Assembly (NCBI RefSeq): GCF_001194135.2
Contig: NC_068981.1
Span: forward strand, 16,367,206 to 16,400,041
From: Octopus bimaculoides
Lineage: Eukaryota
Length of the DNA stretch: 32,836 nucleotides
Reading direction: 5' to 3'
The translations under genes were made by a program, and so were the position numbers. This document shows, piece by piece, positions 4,514 to 29,106 of this stretch. The notes under the pieces are model-generated. The model saw only the letters and a program-made list of their open reading frames with translations, did not search any database and was not told where the DNA came from. Position 1 is the stretch's first letter; every line of letters begins with the position of its first letter.

Positions 4514-5946
4514 ATGTTATAGCTGGTTGTTGGTTTTTGTTGTTGTTAACAAAAGCTGCGTTAACACATCATGGTTTCCCTCTTCAAAGTAGGAAGCAAG
4601 GTAACTTCAGAAAGAGAAAACAAAAATGAAAAGGTGTATGATTTGTTTATATTTTTGCCCTTGTAGGTGATATTGCTCTATTATTCTTTCGGCTTTTTTT
4701 TTCTCTTTAACGTTATTGCTATTGTTGTTATTTTAATTGGCTTCTAACCAACACTTTTAATGGACTATCTAAATTACTTTGATGATTTTCTGCCAAGATG
4801 AAGAAAAAGAAGAAAAAAAATGACTTAACTTAAAACTTGGACATCATCCTTGCACAATGAAACACATACACGTTCACACGTAGATTCATATGTACATAGA
4901 TATACACATACATCCACACTCACATACACATAAAAACTTATATATACATACATATAATAGTCGACTCATCTCCAACATCATATATCAAATGTCACCTCCA
5001 CCATCACAAATCCCACTAAAACACACCAGCACCACCACCGCATAAACAAGAACCTGAAACCCACTCACTACCAACACAGCGCGTGCAGAAAAAATGGTAA
5101 TTAATTTCTCTATTGTATTCCTGCTGACTATTCAATTTATTACAATTTAGTATTGTGTATGTATTTTTTAATGCTGTTTCAAACATCGTCTACAATAGTT
5201 AGGACGCAGATAAAGGTGTTCGCGATGATAGGATAGAAAAAAAAAAAGAAACAATATAATCTCTCCAATGAGACCCATTTCCTGATAAGCTATTTATTTT
5301 AATCATGAATGTGCAGTCTTTAAATAGAAAATAATGTACTGTCAATGTTTGTCTTATCGTGGATTGTTTTTTGCTGTTACAACATCACAATCCTTCATGT
5401 ATCAAATGTTGGCTACGAGAATGCATTTTATTTTCCTTTGAACCAAACAACCATACAGAACGAGCCAACGATGAGGCAACGAAAGAACTTCTCTAAGAAA
5501 ACACCTACACAGACTCTCGATCTGGCTTCCATATATCTTCCATATATCAGACTCTCGCTAGAACTGGCTACCATATATCTTTGAAATCGCCCCATCCTCC
5601 AGTGTCATTAAAACCGGATACGTTCGATAGTGAAAGGTCGTAAATATATAGCTTCTGTTCAGCAGTTTTGATCAAACTAAGGCTAAACTACAATATCAAG
5701 TACTTAAGGAGGGAGCATTTATGCTAGAAGCAGCAGTTGTTAAATTTACACATACACTACTATTGTAGAAAGAGCACTAGGTATTTTTATGCCTCGAAAA
5801 ATGAAGTGAGCGAGATTAACATGGTCCGATTGTCTTTTGATAATAGGTTGGCCTCATCAAGGCTAAGGCAAGGCTAAATCATAAGAACATCAAATGTTAC
5901 GCATTTAGAACTTTAGCTTATTTTATATCTACATAGGAAAAAACGA

Positions 5947-6822
5947 GGATCTTTATGGTTTGACGGGCAACATTTGTTTTCGTAGCGAAACACTTTCAAA
6001 CTTGGGATACTGGTAGAATGTGTCATATAAAACATCTTTTTCTCTTAGCCTTCTTAACAAAAGTTAGTTCTTAATAAGTTATTTCATGTTAAAGTTGTCG
6101 TATTTCTGTAATTTCAACCAATCACTGACGTCTATTCAGCTGAATACAGTTACTGCTCTTTTTATAAACAATAAATTTTTACCGGTGTCAAGAGTGTTAT
6201 TCCCTATTTAATTATTCCCTAGTAAGGGTTTAGGGTTTTAGGGTTAGTGTTCGGGTTTTAGAGTTAGGGTTAGGGTTTTAGGGTTAGGGTTGGGGTTAGG
6301 GTTAGGGTTCGGGTTTTAGGGTTAGGGTTTTAGGGTTAGGGTTGGGGTTAGGGTTAGGGTTAGGGTTATGGTTATGAGTTATAGGATTAGGGTTAAGGTT
6401 ATGGCAAAAATAATCATAACCCTAACCGTAATCCTAAAACTAACCCTAACTCTAAAACCCGAACCCTAACCCTAAAACCCTAAAGCTAAAACCAGTACAA
6501 ACGCACGAACGATGTCATAAATAAGAGTAACACGGGTAGTTGTTGTTGACAAACAACGGGACTAATTTTATTCAAGGGAAAAGATCCCGTAACACCGTTG
6601 TTTACATTCCACGCCATTAATTGTTTTCACCTCAATAGACGTCAGTGATTGGTTGAAATTACCGAAATACGACAACTTTTTACATGAAATAACTTCGAAT
6701 CCCAAATTTTTGTGTTCTATAATACAAAATATACAAGTATACAAAGTTTGAAAGTGTTTCAGTACCAAAAACATTACATAAAACATTAATGAAAAATGTT
6801 GCCCATCAAACCATAAGGATCC
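5947..6822. mobile_element. Non-autonomous fold-back DNA transposon (MITE), Merlin-like termini
   Basis: TIR 27/29 identical (5947-5975 GGATCTTTATGGTTTGACGGGCAACATTT vs reverse complement of 6794-6822). Exact 8-bp TSD AAAAACGA at 5939-5946 and 6823-6830. Further inverted blocks: 6078-6136 vs 6634-6693, and 6229-6273 vs 6440-6484. No transposase ORF. GG..CC ends with an 8-9 bp TSD fit Merlin; the superfamily call is inference. Confidence 0.85.
6223..6492. repeat. Interstitial telomere-like arrays head to head: (TTAGGG)n ~6223-6404, (CCCTAA)n ~6412-6492
   Basis: Canonical TTAGGG units mixed with TTTTAGGG, TTCGGG and TTGGGG variants, followed by the complementary-strand array. Lies at the centre of the MITE. 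Confidence 0.9.
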
Positions 6823-7729
6823 AAAAACGATAAAATTACGTGGTTATTATTGTTTTATTTTTTTGTTTATTTTTTGCTGCAATAACTTGTGTAGCTCGAG
6901 TTCAGCCCTCATTGAGTAGAATTATAATAAAAGGTTATACCAGCTATGACCATCCCAACAATAAATCAAACGCAATTCATTCAAAGGCTGTGGATTTGAG
7001 AGATTTTACGGCAATATCAGAGCTGGTCAACTAATCACGGTGTGATTTTTCTCGTTTTGCGTGACACCACAATGGTTGGAAATGAGAAAAAATATCTTAG
7101 TGTTGTGTGGAAAACAATTCCCTTTAACAAAGTAGTAGCAGACTGTCTTTTTAATGACAAGGAAATAATCGATTAATTAAGAAAAAAAAGAAGGAAAAAT
7201 CAGTTTCCCACTCAAAATCTAATAGTTGTCTTCGATTAGTACTCATTTTCTTTCAATAGACACACGTGTGTCTATAAAAGATATGTAGCTCTCAGACTAT
7301 TTTAAAGTCCTCCAAGTTGTGTATAAGTAGTATCAGTAGATAAAACTGTCATCAAATGATATAGTTCTTTCGTCTGTGCATCTCCACTTATGCTCATAGC
7401 ATTCAACCAGTTAAACCGATCTGGCAGCGCTTACATTCCGTTAGCTCTAAAGGTAGATAACGGAAAGGCACGAATGAAATTGCAAAACATTACTATAGCT
7501 GCTGTATTTAAGAAACCTGTTGTATAAGAATAATAAGCTTATAGATTCAGACACAGACACACACGACATGTACACATACACACGCGCACGTATATTTATA
7601 AATACAAACACGCGTACACGTACATTTACATATTAATACATATATATACAAAGACTCGCGAACAAATTGCAGGTGTTAATTATATACTTTGATTTCTGAG
7701 GGAAGGTATCAAACAATAAGGACTGGAGT

Positions 7730-16888: not shown

Positions 16889-17044
16889 TTTTCTACTCTA
16901 GGCACAAGGCCCGAAGTTTATCGACCCCGAAAGGATGAAAGGCAAAGTCGACCTCGGCGGAATTTGAACTCAGAATGTAAAGACAGACGAAATACGCTAA
17001 GCATTTCGCCCGGCGCGCTAACGTTTCTACCAGTTCGCCGCCTT
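16889..17044 (-). mobile_element. tRNA-derived SINE with internal deletion
   Basis: Near-identical to 22072-22198 (tttatcgaccccgaaaggatgaaaggcaaagtcgacctcggcggaatttgaactcag...ccagttcgccgcct). Joined directly to the tail tctactctaggcacaaggcccgaa. Confidence 0.9.
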
Positions 17045-17103
17045 AAGATCATGATAACATTGAATAAATTGTCTGGTGGAATTGTATTGATATATTTTAT
17101 AAA

Positions 17104-20838: not shown

Positions 20839-21190
<352 letters not shown>

Positions 21191-21884: not shown

Positions 21885-22342
21885 GGCGTGATGGCAAAAT
21901 CGTTAGAACGCCGGGCTAAATGCAGAGCGACATATCATCCGTCGCTGCGCTCTCATTTCAAATTATTATTTCTTTATTGCCCACAAGGGGTTAAATATAG
22001 AGGGGACAAACAAGGATAGACAAAGGGTTAAGTCGATTACATCGACCCCCAGTTCGTAACTGGTACTTAATTTATCGACCCCGAAAGGATGAAAGGCAAA
22101 GTCGACCTCGGCGTAATTTGAACTCAGAAGGTAACGGCAGACGAAATACCGCTAAGCATTTCGCCCGGCGTGCTAACGTTTCTGCCAGCTCACCGCCTGA
22201 TTTCAAATTCTGCCGAGGTCGACTTCTCATTCTTTCAAGGACGATGGAAAAAGTATCAATCGAATACTGAGGTTAATGAAATCGACTATTCCCCCTACCA
22301 CCACCACTAATTTCAGACCTTGTGCCTATAGTAGAAAGGATT
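21885..22342 (+). mobile_element. Older plus-strand SINE split by a nested insertion
   Basis: Head ggcgtgatggcaaaatcgttagaacgccggg...ctcatttcaaatt (21885-21964) resumes at 22200 atttcaaattctgccgaggtcgact and ends ...ccttgtgcctatagtagaaaggatt. Confidence 0.75.
21965..22199 (-). mobile_element. Young full-length SINE with 10-bp TSD
   Basis: Minus-strand head ggcggtgagctggcagaaacgttagcacgccgggcgaaatgcttagcgg, B-box GAGTTCAAATT, short (AAT)n tail. TSD ATTTCAAATT at 21955-21964 and 22200-22209. Confidence 0.92.
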
Positions 22343-24218: not shown

Positions 24219-24436
24219 GAGAAGAAGACGAAGAAGAAGAAGAAGAAGAAGAAGAAGAAGAAGAAGAAGAAGAAGAAGAAGAAGAAGAAGAAGAAGAAGA
24301 AGAAGAAGAAGAAGAAGAAGAAGAAGCAGAAGAAGAAGAAGAAGAAGAAGAAGAAGATGAAGAAGAAGAAGAAGAAGAAGAAGAAGAAGAAGAACAACAA
24401 CAACAACAACAACAACAACAATAGCAACAACAACAA
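24219..24436. repeat. (GAA)n(CAA)n microsatellite
   Basis: Directly visible; source of the poly-E/K/S/L/F ORFs. Confidence 0.97.
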
Positions 24437-27700: not shown

Positions 27701-28216
27701 CATACATACATACATACATACATACATGCATACATACATACACATACATTGCCTAAATACCAATCTTAAGAAATTAGGCTTCTCAAAACCAGAAAGGAGA
27801 AAGCTAATTCGAAGACTACAGATCCAATCCATTACTGGAACTGTAAAAATCTGTAAAACTTTCCAGAAGTTTAGCATTTAAATATATATATATTAGCATG
27901 TCTAGCTTTGCAACTATATGCATGAGAATACATACATAAAGCAAAACATACAAATCTGCACATGTACATACACACAAACATAAAATACCCTGTTGTTGAT
28001 GTTAAAATTCCAATGAAGGAGACTTGAATCTAAGTTAGAAACCGGCTCTTTCTCTACTGACAAGAAATCTTGAAATAAAAGTGAACAATGACATGCATAT
28101 ATACAAACACTCGCATATACACACGTAAGCACATACAAACACACACATGCACACACACATATATATAAATATATATATATACATATATAATCGAGCATAT
28201 ACAAACAGACACACTC

Positions 28217-28253
<37 letters not shown>

Positions 28254-29106
28254 CACGTGTGTGTGGGAGATAGAGAGAGTATTTATGTGTTCGAGACACC
28301 TGAACTGGCTAGTGAAAACCGAAATCATTGTAGCTTTGTCATGCACTTTCATAAAACTGTGACTACAGTAGCACTTTATTCCTGTATTCATATATGTCAG
28401 CATTACAGATCTTCCTAATATACTTCACGTACCAATTGACTAACGTTATGGAAGATAATCTCAGAGAGAAACTGCTTATGTTCTTAAAGGAAATTGATTT
28501 GCTAAGTAATAAGTATCACTCACGTTTTCTATTTAGTTAGAAGCTACCTCACACATATACAGCGGAAATCGACAACAAAGTAAGTATATAGATCACAAAT
28601 TTCAACGTAGCTGTGTTACATCTTGCTTTGCCGTGTGCTTATAAAAAGTGGATCATATTGATCATGTCACAAGCTGTACGAACTCACCTTACGAGCAAAA
28701 CTAAGACAGGTCTACGACCTCATAAAGAACATTTTGTTGTCTAGTCATTGCAAATCTAGTATACTCTTTCAGACAAGTCAATACGTTATTGTAAAGCACC
28801 TCAATGTTCTCTCTCATAAGAGAAACTTCGGTGTGTGGGAGCTGTCTCGGATTTATCATCAGGAATTACATCAGCCACTCGAGTTTCTTTTTATTTTATT
28901 TATGTATTTATTTATTCTATTTTAGGGCATCAGTCATTGCAGTACGACCTTTCTGGGGCAAAATCTTCAAATGCTTAGTTGATCGATCGTATCTACAGTA
29001 AAACCTATTTTCAGTTCAGTTTGAATTTTATTGTAATCTGTTTATAAAGCCGCTTAATTAGTTTTAGACACAGCAGTTACAAAGGTACATAAACATCATC
29101 ATCATC

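Follow-up and report, generated by a model that had tools for sequence, protein, structure and literature searches.

A palindromic, probably Merlin-type miniature transposon of Octopus bimaculoides carries a head-to-head telomere-repeat junction

Results

Structure of the element and its core

We analyzed a 32,836-nucleotide (nt) stretch of the Octopus bimaculoides genome (contig NC_068981.1, positions 16,367,206 to 16,400,041; hereafter the window), which harbors at 5947-6822 an element of 876 bp that is palindromic in outline and built around telomere-type repeats. Coordinates without a prefix are window positions; L007 denotes an 8-kb O. bimaculoides scaffold (LGKD02092233.1) and L006 denotes 76 kb of O. 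bimaculoides chromosome CM046612.1. The element is bounded on both flanks by an exact 8-bp target site duplication (TSD), AAAAACGA, and by terminal inverted repeats (TIRs) that have 5'-GG at the tip and are complementary at 27 of 29 positions (Table 1), with ends reading GGATCT... and ...GGATCC. When we searched for further matches to the TIR, allowing up to 3 mismatches, the rest of the 32.8-kb window had none, and neither did any of 100 shuffles. The TIRs are continued inward by an imperfect subterminal inverted repeat of about 250 bp on each side, in which the blocks 5977-6034 and 6713-6770 pair at 79% and the blocks 6091-6155 and 6615-6679 at 91%. The symmetry is interrupted where about 80 nt of the right arm have no partner in the left arm, and 6160-6225 aligns only weakly with 6575-6610. 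When the element was folded as single-stranded DNA, the result was a single long hairpin of -204 kcal/mol, compared with -85 ± 4 kcal/mol for shuffled sequences (z = -28).

At the center of the element, an array of TTAGGG-type units faces an array of CCCTAA-type units across a short unique spacer. Besides TTAGGG, the left array includes the variants TTTTAGGG, TTCGGG, TTGGGG and TTTTAGAG, and with 21 runs of three or more G it is predicted to be capable of forming G-quadruplexes. The spacer is bordered by GGTTAT and ATAACC, and the G-rich strand is directed toward the center from both sides, which is the orientation of a telomere-to-telomere junction. The telomeres of octopuses have been reported to consist of (TTAGGG)n (Adachi et al. 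2014, cited in PMC6160780). Variant units recur in mirror order in the two arrays, with 44 of 45 positions matching between 6229-6273 and the reverse complement of 6440-6484, a value attained by 1 of 2000 unit-order shuffles of the right array (shuffle mean 34.4). The innermost units are mirrored as well, around the 11-nt spacer.

An earlier interpretation made from the letters of this DNA alone (the sequence-only reading) had described an 876-bp element with 27/29 TIRs and an exact 8-bp TSD, all of which are present, and had noted the 44/45 match between mirrored variant units, which withstood the shuffling control. It had also described inverted symmetry continuing inward to the core; this holds for the inverted blocks and for the mirrored arrays but not across the segment confined to the right arm.

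The longest open frame in the element has 84 codons and contains an open reading frame (ORF) of 72 amino acids in the right arm, for which a protein search returned no homologue; the element has no coding capacity. Being short, non-coding, and furnished with TIRs and a TSD, it has the structure of a miniature inverted-repeat transposable element (MITE), with copies of 710-876 bp that lie at the upper end of the usual MITE size. Rfam matches to its center were sub-threshold, generic microRNA hairpins, and we dismissed them as noise that any hairpin would give.

A second copy at an unrelated locus

Merlin-related protein fragments of O. bimaculoides (PMC8101967, supplement) were aligned and used in a protein search, which led to protein P0004 (LOC106883699) and from there to scaffold L007. 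At L007:5575-6284 this scaffold carries the element a second time, in the opposite orientation. Its TIRs are perfect (28 of 28 nt, GGATCTTTGGGGTTTGACGGGCAACATT; ends GGATCT... and ...AGATCC), and it is flanked by an exact 8-bp TSD of its own, CAACGTTA (TAACGTTG on the + strand), which differs from that of the window copy. The two copies are identical at 648 of 704 positions (92%). They share the 11-nt spacer, and their C-strand arrays differ by 1 mismatch in about 77 nt, while the G-strand array measures about 45 bp in L007 versus 180 bp in the window, with 122 bp missing from the L007 copy (Table 1). The length of this array is unstable and changes after insertion.

Since the element is found at two loci with two different duplications, it is mobile, and since the head-to-head core is present in both copies, that core is part of the moved unit rather than a local accident or the scar of a chromosome fusion. 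The same center was assembled at both loci, each with its own flanks, which also makes a local assembly artefact unlikely. The sequence-only reading had proposed a mobile DNA element in place of two independent chromosome ends, a telomeric core that belongs to the element, and a TSD of 8-9 bp. The second copy, with its perfect TIRs and its own exact duplication, bears out the first of these; the shared spacer and C-strand array bear out the second, and the sole other member found does not lack the core. The TSD is 8 bp long in both copies (n = 2).

Searches with blastn and with an nhmmer profile built from the two copies detected, in the rest of the window, L006 and L007, nothing beyond these two copies and one related end, which is described below. 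A pattern scan with an invariant 25-mer gave no match in metagenome, prokaryote-genome or viral collections. A 21-mer of the TIR matched five metagenome sequences; the three inspected (L001-L003) were ordinary bacterial sequence with no further similarity, and we regard these matches as chance.

Table 1. Features of the palindromic element in the window.
Feature	Position	Strand	Remarks
Left TSD copy, AAAAACGA	5939..5946	.	Read directly; identical to 6823-6830
Left TIR, GGATCTTTATGGTTTGACGGGCAACATTT, 5'-GG start	5947..5975	+	93% complementary to 6794-6822
Left arm, TIR and subterminal inverted repeat	5947..6224	+	Homologous to right arm; orthologous to left arm of L007 copy
Invariant 29-nt block GTAATTTCAACCAATCACTGACGTCTATT, left-arm instance	6108..6136	+	Longest exact block common to four arms
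G-strand TTAGGG-type array	6225..6404	+	About 25 units, 180 bp, 52-nt higher-order period
G-strand segment missing from L007 copy	6248..6369	+	Pairwise alignment; expansion here or contraction there; 52-nt period, 3.1 copies
Central unique 11-nt spacer, CAAAAATAATC	6405..6415	.	Identical in L007 copy
C-strand CCCTAA-type array	6416..6495	-	Mirrors outer and inner parts of left array; one mismatch versus L007 copy
Right-arm-only segment	6496..6575 (approximate bounds)	.	Small GTTGTT/AACAAC hairpin; four-arm alignment; conserved in L007 copy
Right arm, subterminal inverted repeat and TIR	6576..6822	-	Includes 22-nt block TTCATTAATGTTTTATGTAATG (- strand) not in left arm
Invariant 29-nt block, right-arm instance	6634..6662	-	Four-arm comparison
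Right TIR, GGATCCTTATGGTTTGATGGGCAACATTT (- strand)	6794..6822	-	Pairs with 5947-5975
Right TSD copy, AAAAACGA	6823..6830	.	Read directly

Comparison of the four arms

In an alignment of all four arms, the same arm is 94% (right) or 87% (left) identical between copies, the value for the left arm being lowered by the difference in array length, while identity between the two arms within one copy is no more than 71-75%. It follows that the master copy had an imperfectly palindromic form before these two copies were made, and we infer that the palindrome arose once in that master copy and not anew at each locus.

One block of 29 nt, GTAATTTCAACCAATCACTGACGTCTATT, is identical in all four arms and is conserved better than the TIRs. 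It lies about 160-190 nt from each element end (L007:5728-5756 and 6095-6123 in the second copy; Table 1 for the window) and holds a CCAAT and a CRE-like TGACGTC motif. It may be a subterminal transposase-binding site or a promoter-like element.

Termini and a neighboring Merlin transposase gene

In Merlin elements the TIRs measure 24-462 bp and start with a conserved 5'-GG, and the TSDs are 8 or 9 bp long (Feschotte 2004, summarised in PMC8101967); both copies of the octopus element show all three (5'-GG...CC-3' ends, an 8-bp TSD, and a TIR length within the range). As a control we used Merlin copies from the eukaryote contigs of ENA ERZ26052287, which encode a transposase with about 60% identity to P0004. 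Three of the four copies were inspected (L009, L011 and L012); they end in GGAACTTC...GAAGTTCC (GGAAC...GTTCC), and all three have exact 8-bp TSDs (CAATTTTA in L009, GGGAATTT in L011 and AATGTTAT in L012). This control family (L009:4348-6879, L011, L012) is about 2.5 kb long with TIRs of about 120 bp, is young, with copies that are 97-99% alike, and is set among reverse-transcriptase genes in long contigs. No related MITE was found at the loci of P0010 and P0011 (L008-L012, other eukaryotes).

O. bimaculoides is rich in Merlin elements, with 191 sequences, the most among the protostomes surveyed (PMC8101967), and recent insertions are on record for Merlin families of O. vulgaris (PMC13282606). 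The Merlin transposase proteins of O. bimaculoides comprise P0004, P0021, P0122, P0123 and P0002; at least four proteins of the species are at least 90% identical to P0004, with P0021 at 92%. The P0004 gene matches DDE_Tnp_IS1595 over L007:3223-4056 (Pfam E = 5e-17). Over L007:3223-4140 it is a near-intact pseudogene, whose reading frame is broken once, by a stop at the conserved EFMW motif 24 codons short of the natural end; the natural C-terminus, ...LYPCV, lies near L007 4131. The second copy of our element is situated about 1.5 kb from this pseudogene.

About 470 bp past the natural stop of P0004, L007:4503-4602 carries a terminus, GGATCTTT... (ending ...AAAAAAGATCC), that is homologous to the right end of the element over about 100 nt, with 89% identity over 80 nt and an identical GGATCTTT tip. 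The homology takes in the 22-nt block confined to the right arms. A MITE and its parent usually share their ends and have unrelated interiors, as would be the case here. The stretch between the P0004 gene and this terminus contains (GATA)n and (CAGA)n microsatellites. No autonomous element that is complete and has identical TIRs (GGATCTTTRKGGTTTGAYGGGCAACATT) was seen in the sequences compared.

Neighboring sequences

The window is rich in microsatellites and includes two long trinucleotide arrays, (TAT)~104 at 20860-21172 and (AGA)~58 at 24220-24394. N gaps occur at 2346, 7764, 9864, 13661, 23345, 25705 and 29407, most of them beside AT or TG microsatellites, as is typical of a short-read draft. 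Two adjacent copies of a repeat at 441-899 and 928-1131 share the translation ...NVIRxYNQCxSLCDKxCxxFNCxCHTDTIHQP.

Copies of a short interspersed element (SINE) are abundant (window 16917-17045 and 22031-22204; L006 13085-12919, 58671-58539 and 66042-66215), and those in the window are 88-95% identical to the O. bimaculoides copies in L006. The translation of the SINE contains ...RKDERQSRPRRNLNSE..., and a SINE-derived ORF at window 16622-17104 matches only the uncharacterized protein LOC106868243 of O. bimaculoides, whose gene locus is in L006. The model of that gene (P0001; a 152-amino-acid product over 56 kb) is probably partly SINE-derived, since its last part overlaps a SINE copy. At L006:69677-69701, a SINE copy contains a short interstitial (TTAGGG)4 tract of the ordinary kind, flanked by direct repeats of GTGCTTAG. 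This is the pattern expected of telomerase-type break repair; the tract is unrelated to the Merlin-like element and provides a useful contrast to it.

A separate palindromic, fold-back-like element of about 615 bp at L007:1374-1988 is 73% self-complementary, and elements with long hairpins may be common in the octopus genome. L006 also contains a relic mariner-type transposase at 53242-53553 (-) (WPPNFPDYNPFDYYVWG) and, at 28043-28327 (+), a C2H2 zinc-finger ORF abutting a large N gap.

Discussion

Because of its GG termini, its 8-bp TSDs and its link to the terminus of a Merlin gene, we interpret the element as a non-autonomous member of the Merlin superfamily, as the sequence-only reading had suggested. 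We consider it probable that the window holds one copy of a MITE-like family of Octopus that belongs there, and the Merlin assignment taken by itself is a likely one. The Merlin transposase would be the mobilizing enzyme: an IS1595-like DDE transposase acting in trans would move the element by cut and paste and leave 8-bp TSDs. The search for an autonomous partner that the sequence-only reading had called for yielded a partial answer, namely a Merlin gene followed by a terminus homologous to the right end, but with no 5' end and with different TIR positions 9-17.

Several observations weigh against this interpretation. Taken by itself, an 8-bp TSD is also compatible with hAT, P and a few other superfamilies. 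Just two full copies were found, and the second came from a contig that had been picked for its Merlin gene. No paralogous empty site was found; the flanks of both insertions are unique within the sequences that were compared. TIR positions 9-17 read TTTTAAAAC at the Merlin end in L007 versus ATGGTTTGA and GGGGTTTGA in the element, and for the L007 Merlin copy we found no 5' TIR, no inverted partner of the 3' end, no matching TSD and no second GAGGTATT. The related 3' end could therefore be a chance solo fragment of a sister MITE, and in view of both the TIR differences and the missing 5' end, the L007 Merlin copy is at best a truncated relative or a member of a related subfamily, not the exact mobilizer. 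The fold-back origin proposed below is pure inference, and given the asymmetry of the arms, with about 80 nt extra on the right, it requires that later insertions or deletions be assumed.

One rival explanation is that the element is a MITE of another superfamily with an 8-bp TSD or a fold-back shape (hAT, P or MuDR/Foldback) and that its Merlin neighbor in L007 is coincidental. An 8-bp duplication is typical of hAT and P elements, arms that are long and tandemly repeated in their inner parts are reminiscent of the FB elements of Drosophila, and the neighboring Merlin copy lacks its 5' end and differs at TIR positions 9-17. The termini argue otherwise: they read GGATC, which is neither the YARNG of hAT elements nor the CA of P elements, so that for a hAT-derived MITE the length of the TSD fits and the terminus does not. 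FB elements and MULEs typically have TSDs of 9-10 bp, whereas ours measure exactly 8 bp in both copies, and tandem repeats occupy only the innermost part of the arms, with the telomere hexamer as their unit. The 5'-GG...CC-3' ends are those of all described Merlins (PMC8101967) and of our control copies, and the roughly 100 nt of end homology occupy the position and have the orientation expected of an element end downstream of a Merlin transposase ORF. We regard any other superfamily as unlikely. A different doubt concerns abundance, since the element could be a genuine Merlin MITE of low copy number, with the telomeric core limited to a small subfamily and with no genome-wide role in interstitial telomeric signals or rearrangements. 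Two copies in total, none of them in the 76 kb of L006 or in the rest of the window, agree with this, as does the 8% divergence between the copies, which gives no sign of very recent activity. One copy in a window of 33 kb hints, however, that the family is not very rare, and finding another in a scaffold of 8 kb would be improbable for a very rare family, though that scaffold was not a random choice. We hold low copy number to be a serious alternative, at somewhat less than an even chance. The suggestion in the sequence-only reading that an abundant family could account for interstitial telomere signals, or act as fragile or rearrangement-prone sites, is speculative.

The arrangement of the core, a head-to-head (TTAGGG)n-(CCCTAA)n junction with degenerate units, is also what would be left by an ancestral telomere-to-telomere fusion of chromosomes like that at human 2q13. 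A fusion-type interstitial telomeric site would be a unique locus joining two independent chromosome ends. Here TIRs and an 8-bp TSD enclose the arrays, the variant units of one array mirror those of the other one by one, and the same junction, spacer and arms recur at a second, unrelated locus with a different TSD; the second copy refutes a fusion relic, to which we give practically no credence. Another possibility is that a short-read assembler created the palindrome spuriously at a telomere-like repeat; this is a draft assembly with seven N gaps beside microsatellites, in which array lengths can be wrong. Yet the identical spacer and the C-strand array with its single mismatch were assembled independently in another scaffold, and the arms have diverged enough (71-75% identity) to be assembled without ambiguity. 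An artefact is very improbable.

How the palindrome arose can be sketched from its parts. A half-element ending in a telomere-like array may have undergone inverted duplication by fold-back (snap-back) priming at a broken end, and such an origin is probable, because the short unique spacer between GGTTAT and ATAACC is what such priming leaves. The ancestral arrays were probably about 77 nt long on each side; later, the left array would have grown by about two 52-nt blocks in the window copy and been partly lost in the L007 copy, with slippage or unequal exchange as the likely means of such shifts after insertion. Alternatively, an autonomous ancestor with long TIRs and telomere-like inner ends may have suffered an internal deletion.

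A bolder version of the fold-back origin holds that the core is the fossil of a break in or beside a Merlin end that was capped by telomere repeats and then folded back or fused with its sister end, leaving two inverted TIRs on either side of a telomere-telomere junction that Merlin transposase could mobilize, and that the family is abundant enough to be a main source of head-to-head interstitial telomeric sites in octopods. We think this a long shot. If it were true, the family would seed fragile sites prone to forming hairpins and G-quadruplexes, and it would confound the use of head-to-head sites as evidence for chromosome fusion.

The reading best supported by our data is that of a selfish, non-autonomous transposon, presumably without a host function. 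As a side effect of insertion it would place palindromic, telomere-like and potentially G-quadruplex-forming sequence at new sites. Since the head-to-head core lies inside the transposing unit, new insertions would plant look-alikes of fusion scars, and with each transposition a further locus would acquire a pre-formed, fusion-like interstitial telomeric site. The element provides a sequence-resolved case of a putative cut-and-paste element carrying a complete head-to-head telomere junction, and its two independent insertions show that it has moved. Head-to-head arrays are read as fusion scars in chromosome-scale assemblies, and where an element that copies the junction is present it is a source of false positives; it is worth checking for TIRs and TSDs around such sites. 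With a hairpin of about 400 bp per side and a G-rich array of variable length, the element is also a natural test object for the instability and breakage of palindromic telomere-like sites in a heavily rearranged genome. If the family is rare, it is a curiosity of transposon structure.

Among known systems, the FB elements of Drosophila (MuDR/Foldback) are similar in having long inverted arms, inner short tandem repeats of variable copy number, a strong hairpin and, often, no coding sequence. They differ in their 9-bp TSDs and in their own arm repeats, whereas the octopus element has an 8-bp TSD, Merlin-like termini and tandem repeats in only the innermost 80-180 bp of each arm; we use "fold-back" to describe shape only, and the element stands outside the FB group. 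TRAS and SART of insects and the Penelope-like Athena/Terminon elements of rotifers are likewise mobile and physically tied to telomere repeats. These are retroelements that target or end in repeats of one orientation, in contrast to an element of cut-and-paste type whose repeats form an internal palindrome.

Other telomere-type sites within chromosomes offer a second set of comparisons. The human 2q13-q14 fusion site (PMC6410037) shares the head-to-head (TTAGGG)n-(CCCTAA)n arrangement and the degenerate units; it is one historical fusion point with subtelomeric flanks, whereas the octopus junction sits within TIRs and a TSD, has arrays that mirror each other unit by unit, and is present at two or more loci. 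Short interstitial telomeric sites at double-strand breaks, a class treated in PMC6410037, resemble it in being small tracts inside a chromosome, but they have one orientation and no TIRs and are single-copy insertions. Repair by telomerase is a model for their origin. Transposition has been named as a hypothetical source of interstitial telomeric sites (review, PMC6410037), and the interstitial sites of mudminnows have been ascribed to fusions, not to transposons (PMC8557787).

Our literature search found no MITE, Merlin or other DNA transposon described with a head-to-head telomere junction, nor did it turn up these sequences in print. The closest relatives are the Merlin elements themselves. 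They and the octopus element have in common the 5'-GG...CC-3' ends, a TIR length in the range of 24-462 bp, an 8-bp TSD and a Merlin-rich host, and in addition the terminal 100 nt or so are homologous to an end beside a DDE_Tnp_IS1595 gene. What sets the element apart is its palindromic head-to-head telomere core; it is most probably a Merlin-type MITE with an unusual cargo, one for which we found no earlier description.

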